Shown here one piece after another: positions 22,442 to 64,000 of a stretch of DNA of 64,000 nucleotides. A program made the position numbers and the translations under genes. The stretch spans positions 1 through 64,000 of IMG/VR virus record IMGVR_UViG_3300042473_001265. One strand, 5' to 3'. Each line of letters begins with the position of its first letter. Within the stretch, counting starts at the first letter, position 1. The notes below the pieces were generated by a model. It was given only the letters and a program-made list of their open reading frames with translations. It made no database searches and was not told the origin of the DNA.

Positions 22442-23151
22442 TGTTTAATCTGTCAGATAAAAAAATAGTAAGTTTTGGTGACAGTTTTGTGTTCGGATCC
22501 GAGCAACAACACAACAATGATGGGTCGTTGGGATGGATTGGCAGAGCTGCAACTAGACTAGGTGTTGCGTACAAAACATTTTCTATTCCCGGGTGTGGCA
22601 ACGATCATATTGCTCGACAGATATATTCATATGTTGCAAATAATCCGGTGGAGGACACACTGGCAGTAATTAATTGGACCTGGTGTAGCCGATGGGACTT
22701 TTACATTGGACAAGCCGAAACATGGATTACACTGGGCCCAACTTGTGTTCCGGAAAAACTAAAAGATCTTGTATCACACACGCAGGCAGAAGACATGATA
22801 GATTTTTATAAACATCGTGCTAACAGTAGTATTCTGTGGAACAAGTTTAGAAACTTACAGACCATATTTGCTGTGCAATCATATTTAAAAAGTAAAAATA
22901 TCAACAGTATACAAACATATATGGATTATATGATGTTTGACCAAGAATATGATATTCATTCTCCTGACTATGTAAAAGAATTACAAGCATTGGTCAAACC
23001 AAACTTAGAACTGTTTGAAGGTCAAAATTTTATTGACTGGAGTTATAACAAGGGATTTGAGGTTACCAAAGTTGGCCTGCATCCGCTTGAAGATGCACAT
23101 ATTGCAGCTTGTGAGTTGTGGATAGATAGATATGCACAAGCGTTGGACTAA
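22441..23151 (+). CDS. SGNH-like protein (paralog of 41141)
   Basis: FGDSFVFG, PGCGN, INWT..SR, HPLEDAH. Confidence 0.65.
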   Translation: MFNLSDKKIVSFGDSFVFGSEQQHNNDGSLGWIGRAATRLGVAYKTFSIPGCGNDHIARQIYSYVANNPVEDTLAVINWTWCSRWDFYIGQAETWITLGPTCVPEKLKDLVSHTQAEDMIDFYKHRANSSILWNKFRNLQTIFAVQSYLKSKNINSIQTYMDYMMFDQEYDIHSPDYVKELQALVKPNLELFEGQNFIDWSYNKGFEVTKVGLHPLEDAHIAACELWIDRYAQALD

Positions 23152-46559: not shown

Positions 46560-47174
46560 ATGCAAATCAGCACTGCACAACTGCAACAAATCATACCCAG
46601 CAATCCATATGTTTCGCAATGGACCGAAGCACTAAACAAAATCTTACCCGACTACGGCATAGATACTCCGCAGCGAGTCAGCGGATTCTTAGCACAATGC
46701 GCCCATGAAAGTGCAGGGTTTACTGCGCTGAGTGAAAATTTAAACTATCGCAAAGAATCTCTACGCCGTGTTTTTGCCAAATATTTCACCAGTGATTCAG
46801 TGGCCGAACAGTATGCACACAAAGAATCCATGATTGCCAACCGTGTGTATGCCAACAGAATGGGCAATGGTGACGAAGCATCTGGTGACGGATATCGCTA
46901 TTGCGGTCGTGGCCTAATTCAGCTCACAGGCAAAGACAACTATCAAGCATTTGCCGAAAGTGTAGAAATGGCTGTGGAAGATGTGCCAGCATATCTGGCC
47001 ACATTTGAAGGTGCAGTGCAAAGTGCCTGTTGGTTCTGGGAAACAAATAATCTAAACCAATGGGCTGACAAGGGCGATATTGTTACACTGACCAAACGCA
47101 TCAACGGCGGCACCATTGGTCTAGAAGATCGCATCAAGCACTACGAACACGCACTGCATGTACTAGGACTATAA
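46560..47174 (+). CDS. Endolysin, glycoside hydrolase family 19
   Basis: FLAQCAHES.GF..L.ENLNY, RMGNG...GDG.RY.GRGLIQLTGK.NY, TKRINGG..GL..R. Confidence 0.92.
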   Translation: MQISTAQLQQIIPSNPYVSQWTEALNKILPDYGIDTPQRVSGFLAQCAHESAGFTALSENLNYRKESLRRVFAKYFTSDSVAEQYAHKESMIANRVYANRMGNGDEASGDGYRYCGRGLIQLTGKDNYQAFAESVEMAVEDVPAYLATFEGAVQSACWFWETNNLNQWADKGDIVTLTKRINGGTIGLEDRIKHYEHALHVLGL

Positions 47175-47175
47175 C

Positions 47176-47658
47176 ATGTGGTTACTGCATTTCTTTTCAG
47201 ACAGTTTTTTACAGTTCGTAGTCAATGCAGTATTAATAACTGGCGCCGTTAGCACAGTTTTATTCTGTTTCTTTCTCAATAAGATTTTACAATTTTTTCC
47301 GCCATTGGCGCCATACTACAAAGCATTGCAAATTGGCAGTATAGTTGTGCTGTTGGCTGGCGTGTACTTTAAAGGTGGCTACACTACTGAAATGATCTGG
47401 CGTGACAAGGTAAAAGAAGTAGAAGCCAAGTTAGCTGCGGCCGAAGCTGAAAGCAAAAAAGAAACTGTAAAAATTGTAGAACGAGTTGTCAAGAAAACCG
47501 AAGTTGTTCAGCGGCGTGGTCAAGATGTTGTTCAATATATTGATCGAGAAGTTGTCAAGTATGATACAAAATTTTTACCTGGTGGTGTATGTGAAATACC
47601 TAAAGAATTTGTCAAAGCACACAATGACTCTGCTACTCCGGTTGAGGCAAAGAAATGA
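47176..47658 (+). CDS. Putative inner-membrane spanin (Rz-like)
   Basis: TM helices, coiled coil and C-terminal Cys; follows the endolysin. Confidence 0.6.
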   Translation: MWLLHFFSDSFLQFVVNAVLITGAVSTVLFCFFLNKILQFFPPLAPYYKALQIGSIVVLLAGVYFKGGYTTEMIWRDKVKEVEAKLAAAEAESKKETVKIVERVVKKTEVVQRRGQDVVQYIDREVVKYDTKFLPGGVCEIPKEFVKAHNDSATPVEAKK

Positions 47659-47924
47659 AATATCTATTATTACTATCAGTAGTACTATTACAGGCCTGTG
47701 GCACAACAGTGCCAGTCTCTGCAAAATTTCCCGACGCCCCGGGCGCGATTGCAACACAAACATGCCCTGCATTACAGCAACTACCGCAGGATCCCAAACT
47801 AAGCGAAGTATCTAAAACAATCACCATCAACTATACCACATACTATGAATGTGCAGTCAAAGTCGATGCCTGGAATGATTGGTATAAAATACAAAAAAAT
47901 ATTTTTGAAAAGGCAGCAAAATGA
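47655..47924 (+). CDS. Putative outer-membrane spanin lipoprotein (Rz1-like)
   Basis: Lipobox LQAC; Pro-rich; follows the Rz-like gene. Confidence 0.65.
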   Translation: MKYLLLLSVVLLQACGTTVPVSAKFPDAPGAIATQTCPALQQLPQDPKLSEVSKTITINYTTYYECAVKVDAWNDWYKIQKNIFEKAAK

Positions 47925-48418
47925 GTGAAGAACTAAAAAGCGCAAGCGAAACAAAAAAAGAAGACTGGATGAACTCAAAATGGCGTCCAGCCATGGGTTG
48001 GATGTACATGCTGACCTGTGTGACTGACTTTGTAATATTCCCAATTCTGTGGAGCCTGCTGCAGACCTTACTCAAACAACCTGTTACTCAGTGGAGTCCA
48101 TTGACACTGCAAGGTGCAGGACTATTTCACCTGGCCATGGGCGCGGTGCTAGGGGTTGCTGCATATGGTCGTACACAAGAAAAACTTGGTGGAGCCAACA
48201 ATGGCGGAATACAAACACCACCAACAGGCTTTTCGCCTGGGCTTACAACAACCAGCACACCATCAACAGGATTTGGTGCCACTACTGGGGGCTTTGGCCC
48301 TCATGCACCCAGCACAAGTTTTGCACCAGCCCCTAGCTGGGGTACAACTCCGGTCTCAACAGCACCATCACAGACATTTGGATCTGGGCCGGCGCCTGCA
48401 CAAAAACCTGAACTTTAA
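47921..48418 (+). CDS. Putative holin (3TM/GTA-holin-like)
   Basis: WRPAMGWMY...TM...LGVAAYGRTQEK. Confidence 0.6.
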   Translation: MSEELKSASETKKEDWMNSKWRPAMGWMYMLTCVTDFVIFPILWSLLQTLLKQPVTQWSPLTLQGAGLFHLAMGAVLGVAAYGRTQEKLGGANNGGIQTPPTGFSPGLTTTSTPSTGFGATTGGFGPHAPSTSFAPAPSWGTTPVSTAPSQTFGSGPAPAQKPEL

Positions 48419-48812: not shown

Positions 48813-49601
48813 ATGGATCACTACAAAACACTTGATGTTGCCCGTACTGCCACTCCGGATGAAATAAAAAAAGCCTATCGCAAGCTGGCTTCTCAGCATC
48901 ATCCCGACAAAGGTGGCAACACTGCCAAGTTTCAAGAACTACAAACTGCTTACGACACCCTAAGCGATCCTGCCAAACGACAGCAATACGATAACCCTAG
49001 GCCCAATTTTGGACAACACCCGCATCCGGGCGGACAACAGTTTGACTTTGACACTATATTTGATGTGTTTGGCACTAGGTTTACTCAGAGCACTAGGCAG
49101 CGACCACAAACAGTCATCAGCAGAGTAGGACTGACCATCAGTCTAACTGACGTGGCCACTGGTGGCAAACGCACCATTGGGCTGGGCCACGGGCAAGCCA
49201 ACACTATCGAAATAGACATACCCGCAGGTATCAATCAAGGCGATAGTGTGCAGTACAAAGGCATTGCTCCGGGTGGTGGAGATTTGATAATAACATTCAG
49301 CGTTCGCGACGATCCCAAATGGCAACGGCAAGGAGCAAATTTACATACCGAACAGTTGGTGAATATTTGGGATCTGATTGTGGGTGGTGAATCTGTGGTC
49401 CGGGACCTGTTCAACGAAGAGATAACCATTCTAATACCGCGGGGCACACAGCCCGGTAGTAGATTACGGTTAAGGGGTCGTGGACTGCCCAGCAAAACTG
49501 GCCCAGGCGATATAATTGTGCAGGTACAGGCTGTTATTCCCGATCACATACCCGAAGATTTGTTAAATATGATAGAACAAAAACGAACAACTGTTGGTTG
49601 A
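48813..49601 (+). CDS. DnaJ/CbpA-type co-chaperone without zinc finger
   Basis: J domain with HPD; C-terminal IP.GTQPG..LRLRGRG. Confidence 0.9.
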
Positions 49602-49655
49602 TCTAAAGTTTAGATCGTAGTATAATACTTTAATTGAATACTCACGAAAGACACA

Positions 49656-51929
49656 ATGCAAAATAATCCAGAAATCGATGCTGTAGTCAACAACGCCACT
49701 GCCATTGCTGTGGGACACAAACACGGATATGTGCTGACAGAACATGTGCTGCTGGCCATGGTACAGTATCCATCGTTCCGCAAAATACTAGAAAAATACG
49801 GAACACCAGTTGAACAACTAGAATCTGAATTGCACAACTACCTGCAGAGTCAAACCAGCCTGTTGACAGACCGCACAGATCCCCCACGCAAAACCAATGC
49901 ACTGGAGCGAGTGTTTAATCGGGCGCTGACACAGGTACTGTTCACGGGCCGTAGAACAATTACCTTGTTGGACTTGTATTTGGCCATGATGTCTGAAACC
50001 AACAGCCATGCACATTACTACTTGTTGAAGTATAATGTTCGCAAAACAGAATTTGCTGAATTCTTCCAAAAGAATTACAACATCACTGATGTGGAATTGA
50101 CCAGCGCCAAGGCCGACGAAATTCTTGAAGAACACTGTGTCAATTTGAGTCGCAGAGCAGCCGAAGGTCAACTTGAACCCATGATTGGGCGCACAGCCGA
50201 ACTGGAAGAAATGATCACTGTGCTGGCCCGCAAGTTCAAGGCCAATGTGCTGATGGTGGGCGATCCGGGTGTGGGCAAAACTGCCATCATTGACGGACTG
50301 GCACAAGAAATTCATGCTGGCTCTGTGCCAGAGTTTCTCAAAGGTGCAGAAGTTTGGGGACTGGAAATTGGATCCCTGTTGGCTGGCAGCAAGTATCGCG
50401 GCGAGTTTGAAGAAAAGTTCAAAGATGTTATCACAGCATTGAAAACCAAGAAGAACTGTGTGCTGTTCATTGACGAAGCACACACCATGATGGGTGCGGG
50501 TGCCAGTGGATCCAGCAGTCTGGACTTTGCCAACATGATCAAACCGGCCATCACCAGTGGCAACTTGAAAGTGATTGCCAGTACCACCTGGGAAGAATAC
50601 TACGAATCATTCGAGCGTGATCGTGCGCTAATGCGCCGTTTTCACAGAGTCACCATTGGTGAGCCGGATGCTGCCACCACTGAGCAGATCCTGATTGGCA
50701 TCAGCCCTAGACTGGAATCATTCCACAATGTGATGATTGACACAGACGCCATGTGTGCAGCAGTGGAACTGAGTGGACGCTACATACACGATCGTAAGAA
50801 TCCTGACAAGTCAATTGATCTGCTGGACGGTGCCTGTGCTGCACAGCGAGTGTTGGATCAAGGCACAGTCACAGTGAACAAACACATGATCATGGCACAG
50901 GTCAGCCGTGTGACCAGTATTCCACTGGACCGCTTGCAAAACGAACGCAGTATCAAAATTACCGAACTTGAAAGCAATGTCAAACAATTCCTGTACGGGC
51001 AGGATGCAGCAATTGACACTGTGCTGGAACGAGTGTACATCAACTTCTCTGGCATTGGCAATCCCAAAAAGCCGGTGGCCAGCTTTTTGTTCCTGGGTCC
51101 AACTGGCACAGGCAAAACAGAATTGGCCAAGCTGCTGGCAGAGAATCTTGACATGCACCTGCTGAAATATGACATGAGCGAGTTTCAGGAAAAGCACAGC
51201 ATTGCCAGCTTGATTGGTGCACCGCCGGGCTATGTGGGCTTTGATGACGGCAATGTGGGCGGCGGCAAATTGATCAGTGACATATCCAAGAACCCATTCA
51301 GTGTGCTGCTGTTTGATGAAATTGAAAAGGCACATCCTGACGTGGTCAACATCATGTTGCAGATGCTGGACGAAGCCAAAATTACTGGCAGCAGTGGCAA
51401 ATCAGTTGATGTTAAAAACTGCATCATCATCATGACCAGTAATTTAGGTGCCAGAGACAATGAAAACAACAACATTGGCTTTGGCAAATCGTTGGAAAAA
51501 TACGGCGAAGAAGATCGTGCAATGAAAGACTTCTTCAAGCCGGAACTGCGTAACCGCATTGATGCTGTGTGCAAGTTCAACAAGTTGGATCCATTGGCCA
51601 TCAAGAAAGTTGTGGTCAAGTTCACACGAGAACTACAGCAGAGCCTGTACGCCAAGAACATCAAGCTGATGTTTGATGAAAGTGTTATCAACATGCTGTC
51701 GGAAAAAGGATACGATCCCAAGATGGGTGCTAGACCGCTGAGTCGCAAGATTGACGAACTGATTCGTGTTCCGCTCAGCAAGCGCATACTGTTTGATCAG
51801 ATCAAAGACTGTTCTATATTGGCCATCATGGTTGCTGACGAGCTGATGTTTGTGACCAAACCGCTGACTGGTCCCCTGCCAATTGTGGACGGAAAAGGAT
51901 ATATTTTACTCGATGCCCCTGCTGTCTGA
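49656..51929 (+). CDS. clpA: ClpA-like AAA+ unfoldase
   Basis: Clp N domain, GDPGVGKT, GPTGTGKT, DMSEF.EKH, IGF loop; no ClpB middle domain. Confidence 0.88.
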   Translation: MQNNPEIDAVVNNATAIAVGHKHGYVLTEHVLLAMVQYPSFRKILEKYGTPVEQLESELHNYLQSQTSLLTDRTDPPRKTNALERVFNRALTQVLFTGRRTITLLDLYLAMMSETNSHAHYYLLKYNVRKTEFAEFFQKNYNITDVELTSAKADEILEEHCVNLSRRAAEGQLEPMIGRTAELEEMITVLARKFKANVLMVGDPGVGKTAIIDGLAQEIHAGSVPEFLKGAEVWGLEIGSLLAGSKYRGEFEEKFKDVITALKTKKNCVLFIDEAHTMMGAGASGSSSLDFANMIKPAITSGNLKVIASTTWEEYYESFERDRALMRRFHRVTIGEPDAATTEQILIGISPRLESFHNVMIDTDAMCAAVELSGRYIHDRKNPDKSIDLLDGACAAQRVLDQGTVTVNKHMIMAQVSRVTSIPLDRLQNERSIKITELESNVKQFLYGQDAAIDTVLERVYINFSGIGNPKKPVASFLFLGPTGTGKTELAKLLAENLDMHLLKYDMSEFQEKHSIASLIGAPPGYVGFDDGNVGGGKLISDISKNPFSVLLFDEIEKAHPDVVNIMLQMLDEAKITGSSGKSVDVKNCIIIMTSNLGARDNENNNIGFGKSLEKYGEEDRAMKDFFKPELRNRIDAVCKFNKLDPLAIKKVVVKFTRELQQSLYAKNIKLMFDESVINMLSEKGYDPKMGARPLSRKIDELIRVPLSKRILFDQIKDCSILAIMVADELMFVTKPLTGPLPIVDGKGYILLDAPAV

Positions 51930-53575: not shown

Positions 53576-54352
53576 ATGAATTATCTTGTAATCTACCCTG
53601 GTCGTTTTCATCCATTTCACCGCGGTCATATGGCCAGTTATGATTGGCTGACTAAAAAGTTTGGAGAAAATAGCGTGTATATTGCCACCAGCAATGTGCA
53701 GGCACCCATCACCAGTCCGTTCAATTACAGTGACAAAGTGATGATGATGACCAAGTTGGGTGTTCCGGCTAGCCACATTGCCAATGTGAAGAATCCTTAT
53801 CAAGCAACAGAAATCACTGGTAATCTGTCCGACGACGAAAAAAACAAAACAGCATTGGTATTTGCAGTCAGTGCCAAAGACGCTGAACGCTTCAACTTTG
53901 CTCCAAAAAAAGACGGCACGCCAGGTTATTTGCAACCACTGCCCAAGACTGGCAAAGGCGTAAAGCCCATGACCAAACACGGTTATGTGGCCATCACTCC
54001 CACCATCAACTTCCAAGTAAACGGAGTAGATGCCAACAGTGCCAGTGAAATACGCAGCATGTATATCAAAGGCAATGACCATGACAAGGATCAGGTCATT
54101 GCTGATCTGTACGGACAACCAGATCCGGCAATTCGAGCAATGTTTGATAAAAAGTTAGGCATTGGTGAGCAGATACAACAGCAGATCAACGAAGCACGCC
54201 GCAGTGTTGGCGCTGGCAGACAGTTTGGTAAAACTCAGCTTGCAGAATGGATGCAAAATGTGTTACAATTAGAAAAACAAGCAAACAGTATTGATCTTGA
54301 TTTTTCCCACATCAACCCAGATTATATAGACGAAAAAACTTATAATCGTTAA
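53576..54352 (+). CDS. HxGH nucleotidyltransferase-like late protein
   Basis: YPGRFHPFHRGH, SPF, SASEIR; TAAATA at 53563. Confidence 0.75.
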   Translation: MNYLVIYPGRFHPFHRGHMASYDWLTKKFGENSVYIATSNVQAPITSPFNYSDKVMMMTKLGVPASHIANVKNPYQATEITGNLSDDEKNKTALVFAVSAKDAERFNFAPKKDGTPGYLQPLPKTGKGVKPMTKHGYVAITPTINFQVNGVDANSASEIRSMYIKGNDHDKDQVIADLYGQPDPAIRAMFDKKLGIGEQIQQQINEARRSVGAGRQFGKTQLAEWMQNVLQLEKQANSIDLDFSHINPDYIDEKTYNR

Positions 54353-56217: not shown

Positions 56218-56227
56218 CCATTTGCGC

Positions 56228-56233
56228 TAAATA
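56228..56233 (+). promoter_or_regulatory. Late-type promoter motif TAAATA (representative copy)
   Basis: Same motif precedes many structural and lysis genes (20665, 23149, 24054, 30852, 39990, 46528, 53563); resembles T4 TATAAATA. Confidence 0.65.
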
Positions 56234-56240
56234 TTACATA

Positions 56241-59200
56241 ATGAATATTCTTGAACTTGATTCCTACAATTTGGCCGACGCTGTTAAGTTTAACCAGCGT
56301 TTGAATCCGCGTCTGTGGGACAACAACGAACAGTTACGGCCCGAAGTGCATGATCATTTGCTGCAAATAGCTGATGATTTCCGCGAGTTTTTAGGAGTAA
56401 GCGGATACGATCTCAAAGATATAACCATCAGCGGATCCAATGCTGCGTACACATACACTCCCAATTCTGACATCGATCTACACCTGGTGGTTGATTTGCC
56501 CGAAGCTGACAACAGCGAAGTGTATCGCGAACTGTTTGATGCTAAAAAGTTTCAATACAACCAACAGCACAACATCACCATTGGCAGTCATCCTGTGGAA
56601 CTGTATGTACAAGATGCTAATAAAACACATGTGAGTCAAGGCATTTACAGTGTGTTGAACAATCAATGGATTGATGTGCCCAAGCGTAGAGATGCTGGAG
56701 TAGATGACATATCCACTCGCAGCAAATACGAAGATTTGGCTGCACGAATTGATAGTGCTGTTGCATCTGGTGATCATGATGACATGGCCAAATTGATGAG
56801 CAAAATCAAAGCCATGCGACAAGCCGGACTGAATCAGCATGGCGAGTTTGGTGCAGATAATCTAGCATTCAAAATGCTGCGCAACCAAGGCGCTATCAAA
56901 CGATTGATTGACGCTAGAAACGCTGCCAGAGACCGGGAGTTGAGCCTGCGTGAGCGTGAAATAGTTGTTAAACGACCATTCACATACGGATTCAAAACTG
57001 AAGATGTCAGCAGCAATCCCAGTGGTGTGAGCCCCGAAACAAAAATGTTCTTAAGCGAAAAGCCCGCAGCCAGTGTCGTTGACATTGTGTCATCGTTCAT
57101 TGATTACTGTGTGGAGCAGTTGGGCATTGAGCAACCGCCTCAAGTGAAGTTCAAGAAGGATCCGCAGTGGAGCGCTCGTAACAAAACTTTTGGCCGTTAC
57201 AATTCTGACCATAATCTATTGGAAGTGAGCCTAGCTGGACGCCATGTGATGGACATATTGCGCACAGTGGCACATGAACTCACCCACACCAGACAACACG
57301 AAATAGAAACAGTGCCAGACACTGCCGGCGCCACTGGTAGCCGATGGGAAAATCAAGCCAACGCCCAGGCCGGTGTGCTGATGCGTGACTATGCCGAACA
57401 GCATCCGGAGTTTTTCAACGATGACGGGTTAGAAGAAGGTATCCGGGACAAGTTAGCCACGGCTGCATTGGCAGCATGTGTTGCTGGTTCACCAGGCTGC
57501 GCCACAACCACTCCGATCAACACTGGCGCTGACGCTGTGAAGGCTGCTGTGCGAGCCAGCCAATTGACTCGTGCTGGGTTGGAACACGGAGCAAAACAAG
57601 AACTTAAGAATGTGCTGCGCCGTGGTGCAAATGCCAATGAAAGTTCTGGTTATATTCCAACAAAAAAACAAGCTAGAGATCCACGCTTTAGCATGGCTCT
57701 TACAAAAGATGTACAACCTGGTGCCACAGGTCGAGAAGCCAACAAATTAAACCTTCGCACAGACACGCAAGGCAAGCCGGCACTGTTGATGAAGACTGCC
57801 AACCTGCGTGAAGATCGCATGCAGCGGCAACGGACTGACCCCACATACAATGTGGCTGAAGATGACTTGTCCGAAGTTGATCGCCGGGCTGCGTTAAAAG
57901 CGTTGGGTGCAGGCGCAATGGCTGCTGCGGTACCGGGCGTGGCCAAAGCCGGACCTTTTGTGGATGTTGCTGCCCTAGGAAACACCAATCCTGACCAGTT
58001 CAACAAAGTATGGGTGCCCAGGTACAAAGAACTCACTACTCGATGCCAAGACATCCTGCGCCAATTGATTGCAGCAGCAGGCCCCAAATGGGCGCCGCTG
58101 TTGAAAGGCACTACCATTCGTGTAGTCTCAAGTGAAAATTATGCACAGGCCAGTGCAATTTCGCGCACCATCACTATTGATCTTTCGGTGTTCTGGGATG
58201 CTCCAGATGCGGCCTTGGCATTTACCATAGCACATGAGCTGGGACACATTGCCCTGGAACATGCCACTGGTACCGATGATGCGTCAGCGGACTACAAGAC
58301 TCAAGTACGAGTGGCTGCACAGTATCGGCAAGGCGAACTAGACGCAGACGAGTTCGCAGTGCGCCTGTGCAAGACACTGGGCTACAACAAGGCCGAAGTA
58401 TTCAAATTCATTGCCAAGAACGAAGCAGAATTGCAACTGTTGGATGTTCTGACACAGTCACCTACCAGCAGTCACCCCAGCCAAAAGACACGAATTGAAC
58501 GAGCCAGGATGAATGGGTTTCAGTTGAGCCGGGGCGGCATCGAACAGATGAATGTGTTGAAGCAACACCTGGCCGAAGATGACACTGAACACCGTGATAT
58601 AGTCAACCGCCTGAGTCGTGAACTGAAACTGTATGAAGATCAGGACCTGTTTGAAATCAACATGAGTCCCACAAATCTAAAGAAACTGGCAGCACAAACA
58701 GGCGCCATGGCTGGCATGGAATTTGAGATGATTGTGCCCGGTGCTGATGGCGGCGACGATGCTGCGGATATGGAACCCGACTACGACGCCGACGAAAATG
58801 TCATGAGCATCGAAGATGCAGCGCAGTTCTTTTTTGACGGTGACTTCAACGGTCGAAGAGACATTCAACGCCTGCGTGACAGCATGAGCGAAGATTATCA
58901 GACATGGCTAGGCGATGCATGGATGGAGTATTTTGAAACCTACAAAAACACCATTGTGTTTAGATACGGCAAAGAAAATTGGTCAGAGGCAGACATTGCT
59001 GAAATATTGGGCCTGGACGAAGCCGCAGCAGAAGCGTTGGAAAATCGTGGAGCAAGCCCTGAAGATTACATGGACGCTGCCGAAAAAGTCATTGAAGACG
59101 GTTTGGATCCCTGGCTGAATGATGCGCAGGAAGATGCACAAGAAGACTATTACAATGATGATCATGAAGAGGATTGGCTGAGAAGTGAAGGCATTCGCTC

Positions 59201-60584
59201 AATGAGCGATGTTTCGAGTCAGTACGATATTTCCTGGCCCTATTGGAGCACTCCTGGCAGCGAAGGCGCCAGCATTGAAGAAGTTGCTGATGAATTCCGT
59301 GAGGCCATTGGTCGCAAGGTAAACTGGTCTGCCAACTATCATGGTGGCCGCCGCGAACCCGATGCTTATGTGGTTGAGCCTGACGGCAGCCTGGAACCAG
59401 ATGACAGCAACGATTCTGGACTGGAGTTTGTGAGCCCGCCCTTGCCTGTTGACGACATGATTAGTGATCTAAACAAGGTCCGGGCCTGGGCCAAACAACG
59501 AGGCTGCTACACCAATGATTCAACCGGCCTGCACATCAATGTGAGTGTGCCGGGCTTTGACAACGACAAACTGGACTATGTTAAACTAGCTCTGCTGCTG
59601 GGTGACCAGTATGTGCTGGATCAATTTGGACGCACCGGCAACACCTATGCCAAAAGCGCCATGGGCATGATCAAAGAGCGAATCGCTCAGCGTCCCGAAG
59701 ATGCTGCTGCCATGTTGCAAAAAATGAAAACAGGCCTGGGCGAACTGGCCACCAAAGTTATACACAGCGGCACGACCAGCAAGTATACCAGTATCAATAC
59801 CAAGACTGGATACATTGAGTTTCGCAGTCCCGGCGGCGATTGGCTAAATGAAAACTTTGACAAGATTGAAACCACGCTGTTGAGATTTGTAGTGGCATTA
59901 GATGCTGCCATGGATCCGGCAAAGTATCGCGACGAATACCTGAAGAAGCTGTACACTGTACTCAAGCCTAAAGACCAAAATGATACCTTGAGTTATTTTG
60001 CTAAATTTGCTGCTGGTGAATTGCCCAAGGCTGCACTAAAGAGTTTTATCAAACAAGCACAACTGGAACGCAACAAGGTCAAAGATACCTATGCTGAACT
60101 CACGCCCGGACAAAGCAACTACAAGATCTATCAAATCTCTGATGGTAGAACAGTGGGCACATTCTATGCTGCTGATCAAGCACAGGCCAATGCTGAATTC
60201 ACTGACTGGTTGATGAGTCCCGAAGCTGGCGGCAGAGATGACTTTAGATACGCACCAATTGACACACCAATTCAAGGTCCTGTGGCCACAACACCTGTGC
60301 CCGGCGTCATTGACATTGAGCCAGATGTAGAACAGAACTTTGTTCCTGGTAGCACCCTGGATCTGCAACGCCAACGTCAACAAGCAGCACAGCAATCTGC
60401 CGCTAGTGGAACATTTAGAGGCACATGGGCAATCAAAGACAGCCAAGGCAATACACTACACACCTTCAGCGGCATTGGCAATTCACAAGCAGATGCCAAC
60501 AGAGTTGCAGCAGGATGGCTGGCTCGTGCAGGATACCAAGATGGTATCGAAGTTGCGGTTGTGCCAGTCATGGAGCCGTCGTGA
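56241..60584 (+). CDS. Multidomain polyprotein-like protein (1447 aa): Pol-beta-type nucleotidyltransferase, HExxH zincin, Tat-like signal plus M48-like peptidase, amidoligase
   Basis: SGSNA...SDIDLH; AHELTH; DRRAALK...AKA; AHELGH...ELDAD...SHP...RI; GMEFE...EPDGSL...GLEFVSPP...TGLHINVS...IEFRS. Confidence 0.8.
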   Translation: MNILELDSYNLADAVKFNQRLNPRLWDNNEQLRPEVHDHLLQIADDFREFLGVSGYDLKDITISGSNAAYTYTPNSDIDLHLVVDLPEADNSEVYRELFDAKKFQYNQQHNITIGSHPVELYVQDANKTHVSQGIYSVLNNQWIDVPKRRDAGVDDISTRSKYEDLAARIDSAVASGDHDDMAKLMSKIKAMRQAGLNQHGEFGADNLAFKMLRNQGAIKRLIDARNAARDRELSLREREIVVKRPFTYGFKTEDVSSNPSGVSPETKMFLSEKPAASVVDIVSSFIDYCVEQLGIEQPPQVKFKKDPQWSARNKTFGRYNSDHNLLEVSLAGRHVMDILRTVAHELTHTRQHEIETVPDTAGATGSRWENQANAQAGVLMRDYAEQHPEFFNDDGLEEGIRDKLATAALAACVAGSPGCATTTPINTGADAVKAAVRASQLTRAGLEHGAKQELKNVLRRGANANESSGYIPTKKQARDPRFSMALTKDVQPGATGREANKLNLRTDTQGKPALLMKTANLREDRMQRQRTDPTYNVAEDDLSEVDRRAALKALGAGAMAAAVPGVAKAGPFVDVAALGNTNPDQFNKVWVPRYKELTTRCQDILRQLIAAAGPKWAPLLKGTTIRVVSSENYAQASAISRTITIDLSVFWDAPDAALAFTIAHELGHIALEHATGTDDASADYKTQVRVAAQYRQGELDADEFAVRLCKTLGYNKAEVFKFIAKNEAELQLLDVLTQSPTSSHPSQKTRIERARMNGFQLSRGGIEQMNVLKQHLAEDDTEHRDIVNRLSRELKLYEDQDLFEINMSPTNLKKLAAQTGAMAGMEFEMIVPGADGGDDAADMEPDYDADENVMSIEDAAQFFFDGDFNGRRDIQRLRDSMSEDYQTWLGDAWMEYFETYKNTIVFRYGKENWSEADIAEILGLDEAAAEALENRGASPEDYMDAAEKVIEDGLDPWLNDAQEDAQEDYYNDDHEEDWLRSEGIRSMSDVSSQYDISWPYWSTPGSEGASIEEVADEFREAIGRKVNWSANYHGGRREPDAYVVEPDGSLEPDDSNDSGLEFVSPPLPVDDMISDLNKVRAWAKQRGCYTNDSTGLHINVSVPGFDNDKLDYVKLALLLGDQYVLDQFGRTGNTYAKSAMGMIKERIAQRPEDAAAMLQKMKTGLGELATKVIHSGTTSKYTSINTKTGYIEFRSPGGDWLNENFDKIETTLLRFVVALDAAMDPAKYRDEYLKKLYTVLKPKDQNDTLSYFAKFAAGELPKAALKSFIKQAQLERNKVKDTYAELTPGQSNYKIYQISDGRTVGTFYAADQAQANAEFTDWLMSPEAGGRDDFRYAPIDTPIQGPVATTPVPGVIDIEPDVEQNFVPGSTLDLQRQRQQAAQQSAASGTFRGTWAIKDSQGNTLHTFSGIGNSQADANRVAAGWLARAGYQDGIEVAVVPVMEPS

Positions 60585-61468
60585 GAGCACTAGAATTTTT
60601 ACACGAAGACGAACCAGCAAGAATCAAGATTGGTGGTGCTGAAGCAGCAGCCCGGGCACGAACCTGGATTGAAAAGGTGTATGCCCGTTATCCGCAAACC
60701 ATGCAGAACAATCATGTGATGACCTGGGGCTCGGGAGATGACCAACAGTTTGCAATGTTTGAATTAACTCCTAGCTTCAGCCGGCGTGGCGCAGTTGAAG
60801 TCAAATGGTTTCAAGCGTATCCGCTACGGTCTGGGGTGGGCAGTCGTGCTATGAAAGAACTGCAAGCCATGGCCCGAGAAGATGGAATCAGCCTTACATT
60901 ATTCCCCTGGGACAAAGGACAAGTAAGCCAAAGTAAACTGACCAAATTCTACCGAGGACAAGGCTTTTCTCCAACTGTCAAAGGTGGCAAAGCAATGCAA
61001 TGGAGCCCCGAGCTGGCGGAAGAACTCAGAGTTGATGTACCCAACGAAGAATGGCTTGACGATGCTATTGCGTATGCCAAGCAAAAAAGTCCCGACCGCA
61101 ACGGGTTGCCCTACATGGGCAAGACCACTGCTACTGTTAGACCTGAACCAATGGTATCCATGGATATACTCAAGCGACTACCGGGCATGCGAAACGAACA
61201 GCAAAATGTACGACAAGCGGATCTAGCAGCCATTATGAAAATAATGAAAGACACTGGCAAATTGCCACTGCATAGTTTTACTAATGAAGAATACAAGCCT
61301 TTTATCAATGTGGCCTACGATGGCAGTGCTTGGGTCAACGAAGGTAATCATCGTATCATGGCTGCTGCTGCCCTGGGTTGGAAAGAACTGCCTGTGCAAA
61401 TCAGTTACTTTGATGGCGGCGAACGAGTTGAATCTGGACCCATGTACCCAGGAAAGATTGGACTATGA
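60581..61468 (+). CDS. GNAT-like plus ParB-like two-domain protein
   Basis: GTG start after GGAG; R.GVGS.AM...L.KFY..QGF; NEGNHRIMAA..LG. Confidence 0.7.
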   Translation: MRALEFLHEDEPARIKIGGAEAAARARTWIEKVYARYPQTMQNNHVMTWGSGDDQQFAMFELTPSFSRRGAVEVKWFQAYPLRSGVGSRAMKELQAMAREDGISLTLFPWDKGQVSQSKLTKFYRGQGFSPTVKGGKAMQWSPELAEELRVDVPNEEWLDDAIAYAKQKSPDRNGLPYMGKTTATVRPEPMVSMDILKRLPGMRNEQQNVRQADLAAIMKIMKDTGKLPLHSFTNEEYKPFINVAYDGSAWVNEGNHRIMAAAALGWKELPVQISYFDGGERVESGPMYPGKIGL

Positions 61469-61923
61469 GAGCCAGTGAACTTTTAAACGAAGTAGTTGAT
61501 CTTGACACAGCATTTCCACTAAAGTGGGATCAGCAGTTTGCAGCTCAAGGTGAAATTCATGCGTCGGCCACAGATGCTGACGGCAGAGAAATTGGCATAT
61601 CGTTTACTCCTGCAGGCAATGGTGAAGTAACTGATGTAGCATTTACTCGCGGCGGAACACATGAAATGACTGGGCGTGGTGATGCAGGACGAGTAATGGC
61701 CACTGTGATCAACGCTATCAACACCTATGCAAAAAAATATAAACCACCGTATCTAGCGTTCAGTGCCAAGTCTGGTGGCGGCAGATCCAGTGCATACACC
61801 GCAATGATTCGGCGCCATGCACAGGGATATGAACTAGTGCCCACCGATAAATACCCAGCGGCCTTGAACAACTATCTTGAGTTCATTGGCAGCGATCAAC
61901 CATTTGTGCTGGCAAGAACATGA
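61465..61923 (+). CDS. Putative internal head protein
   Basis: N-terminus MRASELLNE. Confidence 0.6.
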   Translation: MRASELLNEVVDLDTAFPLKWDQQFAAQGEIHASATDADGREIGISFTPAGNGEVTDVAFTRGGTHEMTGRGDAGRVMATVINAINTYAKKYKPPYLAFSAKSGGGRSSAYTAMIRRHAQGYELVPTDKYPAALNNYLEFIGSDQPFVLART

Positions 61924-62705
61924 AAACAAAAGAATTTACCACAGAAGGCTGGAGCCAAAAATACAAAAAAAGTATCAATTGCAGTCATCCCAAGGGCTTT
62001 AGTCAGCGGGCCCATTGCGCTGGAAAGAAGAAGCAAAACGAAAGCGCAGAAATGGAAATGGTGTGTGAAATGTGTGGCCTGTGTGAAACACACGGCGATC
62101 ATTCACAGGACAACTTGGATGAAGCATGCTGGGACACACACAAACAAGTTGGTATGAAGAAAAAAAGCAACAAAATGGTTCCCAACTGTGTGCCTAAAAA
62201 CGAAGAAAAGGAGACCGCAATGACAGAAAATCAAGATGAATTGGCAAGAATACTGGAACTCAGCACAGGAGTAAGTGCAACAGATCGCGTGGAACTAAAC
62301 GAAGAGTTTGATCTAATAGAGTCTATCATTGACAGTCTTGCAGATCGCAATGGGGTAGATGCAGAGACAATATGGGAAGACCTCGACTCACTGACAGATG
62401 ATGAGTTGTATGTGTTTGCAGTGACTACGCCAATCATGGAAGATTGGCAAAAGGCCAACAAAAAGGATCGTACTGCCGGCATGAGTCAGAAAGCTGTCAA
62501 CGCTTATCGCAGAGAAAATCCCGGGTCCAAACTAAAGACTGCTGTAACTACCAAGCCCAGCAAATTAAAGAAAGGTTCGAAGGCGTCGAAACGTCGTAAG
62601 AGCTATTGCAGCCGCAGCCGTGGTCAAATGAAAATGCACAGCATCAGCTGTGCTAAAACTCCGGACAAGGCCATATGCAAAGCACGCCGTAGATGGAACT
62701 GCTGA
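61920..62705 (+). CDS. Putative internal head polyprotein of small Cys/Lys-rich modules
   Basis: MKTKEFTTE; basic modules separated by LDE, LNE and IME linkers. Confidence 0.65.
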   Translation: MKTKEFTTEGWSQKYKKSINCSHPKGFSQRAHCAGKKKQNESAEMEMVCEMCGLCETHGDHSQDNLDEACWDTHKQVGMKKKSNKMVPNCVPKNEEKETAMTENQDELARILELSTGVSATDRVELNEEFDLIESIIDSLADRNGVDAETIWEDLDSLTDDELYVFAVTTPIMEDWQKANKKDRTAGMSQKAVNAYRRENPGSKLKTAVTTKPSKLKKGSKASKRRKSYCSRSRGQMKMHSISCAKTPDKAICKARRRWNC

Positions 62706-62706
62706 C

Positions 62707-62994
62707 ATGAGACTGTATGAATTTGCATTCGGTTCCGGCGTGGACGTCAATGAAAATCTTCGCGACTGGTTCAAAGATAAATGGGTACGCTTTGGTCCCG
62801 ATGGTAAGATACGCGGCGACTGTGCTAGAGGGTCAGAATCTGAAGGCAAGCCCAAGTGTTTGCCACAGTCCAAAGCACATGCACTGGGCAAGAAAGGTCG
62901 TGCAAGTGCAGCAGCCAGAAAACGCAGACAAGATCCCGACGCCAATCGTTCAGGCCCAGCAATAAATGTCAGTACAAAAGGAAAGAAAAAATGA
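62707..62994 (+). CDS. Small basic putative internal head protein
   Basis: MRLYEF...VNE|NLRDWFKDKWV...C.R...PKCLP. Confidence 0.65.
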   Translation: MRLYEFAFGSGVDVNENLRDWFKDKWVRFGPDGKIRGDCARGSESEGKPKCLPQSKAHALGKKGRASAAARKRRQDPDANRSGPAINVSTKGKKK

Positions 62995-64000
62995 ACATAA
63001 ATGATATCATTACAGAATCACAACAAAAATGTCCGCACTGTGGTGGACCTGTGGTGGAATATTCAGAACTAGGCGAGGGCAAAAAAGATGCCTGCTACTA
63101 CAAGGTCAAGGCATCGGCCAAAGTATGGCCCAGTGCCTATGCATCCGGTCGATTAGTTCAGTGTCGCAAAAAAGGTGCTGCCAACTATGGCAACAAGTCA
63201 GAAGGTGTGGCGGAAGGCTTATTAAACGAATTCGCACCAGGTGGAGCTGAAGGTGCTGGACCATATGCATATGGTATAGCTCTAAAAGAAATGGCAAAAT
63301 TGTATGCTGAAGGTGAGTTTGATTTAGTTGACGTCAGCGGCATGGACACAACAAGTCAAAACCAAAGTGATGCCGAAGAAATAAACAGCGTAGCAGATGC
63401 TTTTATCAATCGTGGAATGGAAGCTGGTAGAGAAGCATACCGCATGGTTGACACCATGGTGCAAGAGGACATGGATGAATACCTTGACGGCCAAGGATTC
63501 AATGTTGATGCTGATATCCATGTTGCATACAAAAATGACGTTGACCGTTATAATGCTTCTCCAGAGGGTCAGGCAGGAATCGCTGCGCATGAGGCTCGAC
63601 GAGAAGCCTGGCGGCGGTCAAAGCCGGCCAACCAAGTGATAATACAAGCAATTGATCCCAAAGGCAATTTGCCCATTGACAACACTCGCGTAGTGTTTGA
63701 TGCTAGAGAGTTTAACCTTGAGCCTGGCTTTCTTAAATACTCAATTGAACAAGATATTAAAAAGATCAAAAAGACAGCACCCGGTAGCTTGATTCAAATC
63801 ACCTTGGGCGGCAAACCAACTGATATTCAGGGTATTCTTGACCAATATAAACAGCTCAGCAAGGGGCCACACGATGTGGCGGAAAACTTTGCTGATGGGC
63901 GAAATCCCCAAGACAAGGGCGATGCCAAGCGTCACGGTATCAACACCAAGGCCAGTGTAAGCAGTCTACGCAAAACTGCCAAGCAAGGTGGACGCAAGGG
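62991..64000 (+). CDS. Putative internal head polyprotein, truncated at the window end
   Basis: Read manually: MNINDIITE|SQQKCPHCGG...LGE|GKKDACYYKVK...GVAE|GLLNE|FAP...DVAE|NFADG; open to the window end. Confidence 0.75.
   Translation, partial: MNINDIITESQQKCPHCGGPVVEYSELGEGKKDACYYKVKASAKVWPSAYASGRLVQCRKKGAANYGNKSEGVAEGLLNEFAPGGAEGAGPYAYGIALKEMAKLYAEGEFDLVDVSGMDTTSQNQSDAEEINSVADAFINRGMEAGREAYRMVDTMVQEDMDEYLDGQGFNVDADIHVAYKNDVDRYNASPEGQAGIAAHEARREAWRRSKPANQVIIQAIDPKGNLPIDNTRVVFDAREFNLEPGFLKYSIEQDIKKIKKTAPGSLIQITLGGKPTDIQGILDQYKQLSKGPHDVAENFADGRNPQDKGDAKRHGINTKASVSSLRKTAKQGGRK

Follow-up and report, generated by a model that had tools for sequence, protein, structure and literature searches.

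The leader-bearing gene cluster

The DNA analyzed here, referred to below as the window, comprises 64,000 nucleotides and represents the first 64 kb of the 340,172-bp virus record IMGVR_UViG_3300042473_001265, for which CheckV estimates a completeness of 98%. Near its end begins a gene cluster, spanning 56.2–71.1 kb of the genome, in which most products open with a similar short leader peptide and the large products are strings of unrelated modules; the first six genes fall within the window (table 1). Judging by its major capsid protein, which shares 62–66% identity with the counterparts in Vibrio phage 2.275.O, Pseudomonas phage PA5oct, and Rak2-like jumbo phages, the phage is a T4-superfamily jumbo phage; megablast of the region against cultured phages gave no match. 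Several lines of evidence suggest that the cluster encodes cargo of the phage head, namely the leader itself, a prohead protease encoded elsewhere in the genome, the exchange of modules between relatives, export signals placed behind predicted cut sites, and the virion proteins of a cultured relative.

The leader follows the pattern M-x-x-x-E-F/L-x-x-E, is 5–9 residues long (mostly 9), and is present in 10 of 13 consecutive genes of the cluster. The initial annotation had noted six consecutive starts of this kind, all of which we recover (56241, ATG, MNILEL; 60581, GTG, (M)RALEFLHE; 61465, MRASELLNE; 61920, MKTKEFTTE; 62707, MRLYEF; and 62991, MNINDIITE), with the correction that gene 2 begins with GTG. 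The series is also longer than first noted, as it continues past the end of the window at 64566 (MKAKEI), 65051 (MRAAEFVKE), 66378 (MILNEL), and 70783 (MRASEF). Further leader-bearing gene starts lie outside the cluster at 234156, 234527, 276448, 282655, and 290809, and the whole genome holds at least 15 leader-bearing genes. The start of gene 1 agrees with the starts of its homologs, and the start codons of genes 2, 3, 4, and 6 overlap the upstream stop codon (GTGA or ATGA).

A loose form of the leader motif fits 93 of 2563 candidate starts (3.6%), and the run of leaders is therefore not a product of chance. The binomial probability of 10 matches among 13 neighbors is ~1e-12, and it is still ~1e-5 when each gene may contribute the best of six candidate starts; on these grounds we rejected chance as the main explanation. 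Because the ATGA overlap makes the second codon begin with A, residue 2 (R, K, N, or I) is largely forced. At positions 3–9, on the other hand, the codons differ synonymously, which argues for selection on the leader peptide itself; positions 5–9 in particular are kept as a peptide across unrelated proteins and distant phages while their codons change.

Leaders such as MRAREFIAE and MRALEFLHE have the core E-[FL]-x-x-E in common with the internal proteins (IPs), gp24, and Alt of T4. The T4 IPs have the capsid-targeting sequence MKTYQEFIAE, and the T4 record gives the propeptides MAKINELLRE for gp24 and MELITELFDE for Alt, as well as a cut after FLTE in gp23. With a slash marking the site of cleavage here and below, the Alt sequence MELITE/LFDE is comparable to the gene 1 leader MNILE. 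In T4 IPIII, targeting depends on residues 4 and 7, and processing requires residues 8 and 10 (PMC9026906).

Two groups of leader-bearing genes outside the cluster deserve mention. Adjacent paralogs of 124 and 128 amino acids (aa) at 234156–234913, situated among tail genes, start with MRATEFVLE and MRAREFIAE, have the C-terminal ending FKGYPR in common, and are the most T4-IP-like members of the leader set. At 290809–291306 lies an HD-domain phosphohydrolase gene (phrog_990, E 2.5e-38) whose product starts with MKINELLE, very near the T4 gp24 propeptide; this protein is a further candidate cargo enzyme.

Table 1. Features of the cluster and of the elements associated with it. Coordinates are those of the record; slashes mark predicted cleavage sites.
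Feature	Coordinates	Strand	Remarks
Promoter-like GCGCTAAATATTA	56224..56236	+	ends 4 nt before gene 1 ATG
Gene 1	56241..60584	+	1447-aa polyprotein
Gene 1 leader MNILE	56241..56255	+	homologs start MNINEL, MNITEL, MNIHEL, MDLKEL, MNFHDL
Nucleotidyltransferase module, aa 6-238	56256..56954	+	phrog_36119 E 1.5e-45; Pfam NTP_transf_2 weak
Linker, sites LRE238 and LSE273	56955..57059	+	pLDDT < 50 at aa 244-271
SprT-like zincin module, HELTH, aa 274-394	57060..57422	+	Pfam SprT-like weak; Foldseek minigluzincin leads
Site GLEE/	57426..57437	+	in low-confidence segment 395-401
Inserted small module, ends ANE/	57438..57641	+	missing from closest homologous polyproteins
Conserved SGYIP module, ends NLRE/	57642..57812	+	62-72% identity in relatives
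Linker, sites VAE540/ and LSE545/	57813..57875	+	pLDDT < 50 at aa 526-570
Internal Tat-like signal VDRRAALK...AKA/G, aa 546-570	57876..57950	+	homologous to N-terminal Tat signals of stand-alone relatives (Pfam TAT_signal)
M48/U49-like metallopeptidase module, HELGH	57951..58577	+	Pfam Peptidase_M48 E 4.8e-8, above cut-off
Linker, sites LAE779/, LYE799/, LFE805/	58578..58655	+	pLDDT < 50 at aa 762-810
Amidoligase module	58656..60200	+	Pfam Amidoligase_2 E 4.6e-8, above cut-off
C-terminal small domains of gene 1	60201..60581	+	kept in L008, L009, L010, L012; no cleavage motif between them
Gene 2, 295 aa	60581..61468	+	leader (M)RALEFLHE, GNAT-like half, LAEE, ParB-like half
Gene 3, 152 aa	61465..61923	+	leader MRASELLNE; L008 ortholog starts MRAQEFLNE
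Gene 4, 261 aa	61920..62705	+	leader MKTKEFTTE, Cys-rich basic modules, LDE/ACW, IME/, DUF6321
Gene 5, 95 aa, basic	62707..62994	+	leader MRLYE, site VNE16/; phrog_23735 and phrog_727
Gene 6, 512 aa	62991..64000 (ends 64529, past window)	+	leader MNINDIITE, Zn-ribbon module, GVAE/GLLNE/, DVAE/NFADG
Gene 12, second polyprotein, 1466 aa	66378-70778 (genome)		leader MILNEL; LysM domain, membrane-like segments
Peptidase_S77 (PF03420) prohead protease	197398-198045		84.9 bits vs cut-off 27

A prohead protease of the gp21 family

The initial annotation had supposed a gp21-like protease elsewhere in the genome, and such a gene was indeed located (table 1). It is the one S77 gene found in the genome, it sits in the portal-scaffold-capsid gene cluster, and its product aligns to T4 gp21 (PDB 5JBL) at E 7e-13. 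As read by eye from the alignment, the catalytic His, Ser, and Asp are present. A 95%-complete relative of 335 kb also encodes an S77 protease.

Modules and linkers of the polyproteins

In an AlphaFold model of gene 1 residues 1–1200 (25-row alignment, mean pLDDT 70), four confident domains at ~24–243, 272–394, 571–761, and 811–1200 are separated by low-confidence linkers. The cleavage sites predicted from comparison with relatives all lie in these linkers or at their edge, and each linker has at least one. The 15 acidic linkers listed in the initial annotation are all present in the cluster. A Foldseek search with the whole 1200-residue model gave no match at E <= 0.001, and its leads agree with Pfam.

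We compared the cluster with 20 related IMG/VR loci, among which domain order and content differ widely, so that the modules are reshuffled between related phages, a point on which the initial annotation had called for comparison. When gene 1 is aligned to its closest polyprotein homologs, whole modules prove to be inserted exactly between x-x-E sites. The site GLEE/, for example, is the insertion point of a module that is missing from L009, L011, and L012. This 68-aa module opens, at 57438–57500 and directly after GLEE/, with a stretch resembling a lipoprotein signal, in which a basic residue is followed by LATAALAA and Cys (K-LATAALAAC); a search for homologs of the module detected none. The nucleotidyltransferase module occurs as a stand-alone protein in Maribacter phages and cyanophages. 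Elsewhere the zincin module comes after KLHE/, KLDE/, or a leader, and in relatives it is found either behind a gene-13-like domain as a fusion or alone behind MKSDEF, and the SGYIP module always follows x-x-E (MHE/, VLE/, MFE/, or ANE/). Most relatives encode the amidoligase as a gene of its own, namely L010, L013, and L017–L025, as does RsoM2USA_26; the stand-alone form carries a leader ending in x-x-E directly before its I-x-M-S-P start, and in gene 1 that same start is preceded by LFE/. The M48/U49-like module has 141 representative relatives.

The smaller genes of the cluster follow the same pattern. Gene 4 matches Pfam DUF6321 (E 1.7e-9) and phrog_727, and its N-terminal module sits after ELDE/ inside fusion proteins of relatives, whereas the gene 5 module is internal in the L017–L024 fusions, after SSILE/. 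Modules of the gene 4, 5, and 6 types occur in other orders in fusion proteins of 839 and 1085 aa, with the recurring linkers QGVAE/G, SSILE/G, and LDE/ACW. The amidoligase, zincin, SGYIP, and gene 4, 5, and 6 modules each have the same mature start after x-x-E, whether behind a leader or inside a polyprotein. These comparisons show that the modules behave as cassettes of the form "module + x-x-E" that have been inserted, lost, and rearranged from relative to relative.

The association of the motif with module boundaries was quantified at 124 homology-defined module starts, in a region from -12 to +2 residues. The triplet [LIVFM]-x-E occurs near 64 of the 124 starts, compared with 35.1 +/- 4.9 at random positions, and none of 500 random trials reached 64. 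At the same 124 boundaries, no enrichment is seen for the control motifs [LIVFM]-x-D, E-x-[LIVFM], and [LIVFM]-x-Q, so that the enrichment proposed in the initial annotation holds for the expected motif and its controls stay flat. Motif density is 1.69x the shuffled expectation in the cluster, against 1.19x in the remaining proteome. Identical linkers are found in polyproteins without any peptidase module, and the protease would therefore act in trans.

The initial annotation had also listed the effectors. Its nucleotidyltransferase, peptidases, amidoligase, and basic peptides are supported, whereas the GNAT and ParB identities of gene 2 come solely from language-model neighbors (Atlas) and stay leads, because its AlphaFold model, made without an alignment, reaches a pLDDT of 46. 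Gene 2 has no match in Pfam and is missing from L008, a 78%-identical relative; clear GNAT modules were found in polyproteins of relatives. Gene 10 is Dps-like.

Twin-arginine signals behind the predicted cut sites

Both large polyproteins contain internal signals resembling those of the twin-arginine (Tat) export pathway, in gene 1 at aa 546–570 and in gene 12 at aa ~1108–1136, in each case directly after a predicted cut site. By sequence, both have a twin-arginine motif, a hydrophobic region, and an A-x-A-type end. The stand-alone M48-like relatives carry a leader and then, 2–4 residues on, a Tat signal. In a survey of 185 M48/U49-like family members collected by an exhaustive profile search, 56 have a Tat-like signal, 43 of them N-terminal and 13 internal. 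Nearly all of the N-terminal signals (41/43) follow a leader, and 12 of the 13 internal ones follow [LIVFMA]-x-E. A Glu lies 2–4 residues before the twin arginine in 52 of the 56, the corresponding counts at this position being 9 for Asp and 0 for both Lys and Gln. The Pfam TAT_signal assignment is precomputed for P0002, P0003, and P0014, and the model scores ~21 bits in P0050, P0055, and P0062 and 15.8 bits in gene 12 (cut-off 22.7 in each case). A search for homologs of the gene 12 Tat module detected none.

In 13 family members, as well as in genes 1 and 12, the Tat signal is not at the translated N-terminus, and only the predicted cut would place it there. A Tat signal inside a protein can serve no purpose until cleavage releases it, which argues independently for processing. 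This arrangement also raises the possibility that some of the cargo may be meant for the periplasm. Specifically, the prohead-protease cut might unmask the Tat signals, such that the M48-like peptidase and the small gene 12 module would be packed, injected, and re-exported to the periplasm by the Tat system of the new cell. We put this forward tentatively and regard it as doubtful; if true, it would constitute a two-step delivery of ready-made phage enzymes before any phage gene expression.

Leader-bearing proteins in virions of a cyanophage

Small modules of the gene 4, 5, and 6 types are also found in T4-like cyanophages, between g16 and g17, with leaders such as MKTLKQFLKE. One cultured T4-like cyanophage, S-CREM2, has a published proteome of CsCl-purified virions (PMC10665884 Table 3). 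The virion list includes gp156, a homolog of the gene 1 nucleotidyltransferase (E 1e-40), and gp160, which contains modules of the gene 4, 5, and 6 types; the N-terminal module of gene 6 is 73% identical to part of gp160. The "non-structural" virion proteins of S-CREM2 carry T4-type leaders, namely gp6 (MKDFDSFLE), gp13 (MKDLHSFLTE), gp14 (KRFDAFLTE), and gp154 (MKNFSSFLTE). In this cultured relative the leader predicts virion presence, since within the first 20 kb a leader is found in 4 of 6 virion-detected proteins versus 0 of 19 undetected proteins. Over the 88 kb scanned, 4 of the 5 annotated starts that fit the leader pattern belong to virion proteins. The virion protein gp12 (L042 7704–10313) has an annotated start ~17 codons upstream of the leader-like RFASFMAE, and its true start may lie further downstream.

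Proposed mechanism and alternatives

We propose, with a probability of roughly 0.6, that the cluster encodes leader-tagged head cargo that is cut by the gp21-type protease and delivered with the DNA. The leader would be the counterpart of the T4 capsid-targeting sequence and would take each product into the scaffolding core of the prohead. The large products would be polyproteins in which unrelated modules, namely a nucleotidyltransferase, two zincin peptidases, an amidoligase, GNAT-like and ParB-like domains, and small basic Cys-rich domains, are joined by short linkers ending in hydrophobic-x-Glu. Inside the prohead, the S77 protease would cut after Glu, as the conservation of the motif suggests, stripping the leaders and freeing the modules. 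By analogy with the T4 IPs and Alt, the freed proteins would stay with the DNA inside the head and pass into the next cell upon infection. Of the modular polyprotein reading in the initial annotation, the leader, the protease, the boundary motif, and the shuffling were found; cleavage, packaging, and injection of these proteins, together with a role in host takeover or anti-defense, are what we infer from them.

Several observations weigh against this proposal. The bare hydrophobic-x-Glu triplet is enriched modestly in the low-confidence residues of gene 1 (8–10 of 22, versus 5.5 expected), and therefore context beyond the triplet matters; likewise, folded domains contain many such triplets, which by themselves are therefore insufficient to define a cut site. 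The S-CREM2 virion data report presence, from few peptides (6–7), and not cleavage. For stand-alone proteins with a leader and a Tat signal, export in the cell that makes them is a possible alternative to packaging. The cargo cluster lies 120 kb from the head genes and adjoins genes of replication and nucleotide metabolism. In addition, the phage is known from metagenomes alone. In PA5oct and Vibrio phage 2.275.O, which are the nearest cultured relatives by capsid protein, matches to the leader searched as a DNA pattern were not above those of a reversed control. As the leader is not enriched in PA5oct, the proteome of that phage is unusable as evidence.

Alternatively, the same sites could be cut in the cytoplasm of the producing cell, where the modules would act late and never be packaged; the Tat-exported peptidase and the LysM protein, for instance, could remodel the envelope, with the leader serving as a propeptide or timing device. 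The distance of the cluster from the head genes is in keeping with this idea, as are the N-terminal leader and Tat signal of the stand-alone members, which could be export-competent as made, the LysM domain and membrane-like segments of gene 12, and the Sec or lipoprotein signals of distant bacterial relatives of the peptidase. We nevertheless consider it unlikely. T4 gp21-type proteases are known to act inside proheads (PMC9026906), a single S77 gene was found, and the leader matches a proven capsid-targeting sequence; moreover, homologous modules and leader-bearing enzymes are present in the CsCl-purified virions of S-CREM2.

It is also conceivable that nothing is cut, the leaders reflecting translational coupling or a preference at initiation and the linkers being acidic flexible spacers. 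Residue 2 is dictated by the ATGA overlaps, where AGA accounts for 7 of 8 Arg codons, and acidic linkers contain Glu by composition, such that "..E" is also enriched at the boundaries. Yet the conservation of leader positions 5–9 as a peptide with synonymous codons, in unrelated proteins and distant phages, led us to reject a translation-initiation signal as the main explanation. The absence of enrichment for the [LIVFM]-x-D and E-x-[LIVFM] controls speaks against mere acidic spacers, and intact internal Tat signals would be useless in an uncut protein and are kept at a fixed distance from Glu. The absence of cleavage thus seems improbable to us.

Least credible is that these are classical polyvalent proteins processed by their own zincin or M48 domains without involvement of the prohead protease, as the two HExxH peptidase modules of gene 1 and the autoprocessing proposed for such domains (PMC5512222) might suggest. 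Genes 4, 5, and 6, the L020 and L022 fusions, and S-CREM2 gp160 have the same linkers and leaders but lack any peptidase module, and on this account we rejected self-processing as the main explanation; the site, moreover, fits gp21-type specificity (Glu at P1, hydrophobic at P3), and the export signal of the M48 module fits a role outside the cytoplasm.

Relationship to known systems

The T4 capsid-targeting sequence, the variable internal proteins, polyvalent proteins, and multisite processing in phiKZ-like phages are already known, and the proposed cargo resembles each in part. In T4, IPI, IPII, IPIII, Alt, and gp24, which are otherwise unrelated, likewise carry a short leader built around an E-[FL]-x-x-E core and are cut after Glu, with a hydrophobic P3 residue, by a protease of the gp21 family; the set of T4 internal proteins also differs between related phages and includes basic DNA-associated proteins and enzymes. 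In contrast to T4, the leader here has mostly 9 residues rather than 10, and the cargo includes polyproteins of 1447 and 1466 aa with many internal sites, reaching 2006 aa in relatives. Amidoligase, zincin, nucleotidyltransferase, and HD hydrolase modules are not known from T4, some modules here carry Tat signals, and packaging is predicted here from sequence.

Polyvalent proteins (Iyer et al. 2017, PMC5512222) have between two and 15 unrelated effector-type domains in one polypeptide, and gene 1 combines several as well. The polyvalent proteins likewise hold conflict-type domains, with zincin, GNAT, and ParB-type modules, show rampant domain shuffling, and are predicted to be delivered with DNA; the word "Amidoligase" does not occur in the text of that paper. 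They were, however, proposed to be cut by their own metallopeptidase, typically in MuF or portal contexts, whereas the uniform leader and linkers here point to trans-cleavage by the prohead protease. Polyvalent proteins also adjoin virion or packaging genes, which the present cluster does not; its cyanophage homologs do lie between g16 and g17.

Many inner-body and ejection proteins of phiKZ, 201phi2-1, and SPN3US are likewise cut after Glu at several sites per protein by a gp21-related protease (gp175/gp245) and are ejected into the host (PMC5694885, PMC9026906). Their motif differs (S/A/G-x-E or A-x-E), their propeptides are often > 100 residues and are discarded, their substrates are not strings of enzyme modules, and these phages belong to a different lineage. 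Also similar are the cyanophage g16–g17 proteins (S-SM2 gp108/109, the S-B43 "structural protein," B23 gp266; PHROGs 727, 3477, and 10346), which have the same small modules in other orders, including the gene 4, 5, and 6 types and DUF6321, with x-x-E linkers and T4-type leaders. They differ in being smaller, in lying within a structural gene block, and in lacking large enzyme modules. In the literature, the g16–g17 region figures only as a hypervariable "hot spot" encoding hypothetical proteins (PMC3037559). We found no published account of jumbo phage or cyanophage polyproteins that combine a leader tag with gp21-type linkers, and none of the arrangement of leader and Tat signal.

If our proposal is true, T4 capsid targeting would not be peculiar to T-even phages with three small internal proteins, but would represent a general modular delivery platform in jumbo phages and in the abundant marine T4-like cyanophages. 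The rule of a leader plus x-x-E linkers would tell which "hypothetical" proteins are virion cargo, the hypervariable g16–g17 region would gain a function, and polyvalent proteins would gain a trans-acting protease. The Tat-signal rule makes it testable whether injected phage proteins reach the periplasm of the newly infected cell, and the system would be a natural source of cleavable linkers and leaders with which proteins could be loaded into phage heads.

Promoter-like motif and neighboring genes

The 13-mer that ends just before gene 1 (table 1) also occurs upstream of the gene at 224838 that encodes the tail sheath (phrog_10581, E 2e-212), which counts in favor of the proposed head cargo. 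This 13-nt match is the only basis on which the genes can be called late, as they were in the initial annotation. Many genes, including several structural ones, have the shorter motif [CT]TAAATA 6–40 nt upstream, and the genome encodes a gp55-like late sigma factor. In many cases (in the window at 23148, 39989, 48807, and 56227, and genome-wide) [CT]TAAATA lies just 6–14 nt before the start codon, often without a Shine-Dalgarno sequence in between, which suggests that late transcripts are leaderless or have a very short leader. CTAAATA shows a strand bias, with 24 forward and 10 reverse occurrences.

A few kilobases upstream of the cluster, at 48813–51929, lie a DnaJ-like gene and a gene for a 757-aa ClpA-like AAA+ protein. 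Speculatively, a cut after leader Glu5 would leave Phe or Leu at the N-terminus, residues of the class that the ClpS/ClpA pathway recognizes as N-degrons. At 53576–54352 there is a cytidylyltransferase-like gene without a leader. In S-CREM2 the corresponding enzyme, the cytidylyltransferase gp154, is found in virions and starts with a T4-type leader, and in the relatives L009, L011, and L013 the cytidylyltransferase is fused to a gene-4-type or HD module. A likely lysis cassette at 46560–48418 consists of an endolysin-like gene, two membrane proteins, and a small lipoprotein, MKYLLLLSVVLLQAC, that resembles an outer spanin; its proteins carry ordinary signals and no leader. Elsewhere in the genome, a region at ~104000–111000 contains only short, implausible open reading frames on both strands and looks like a tRNA or other noncoding array.

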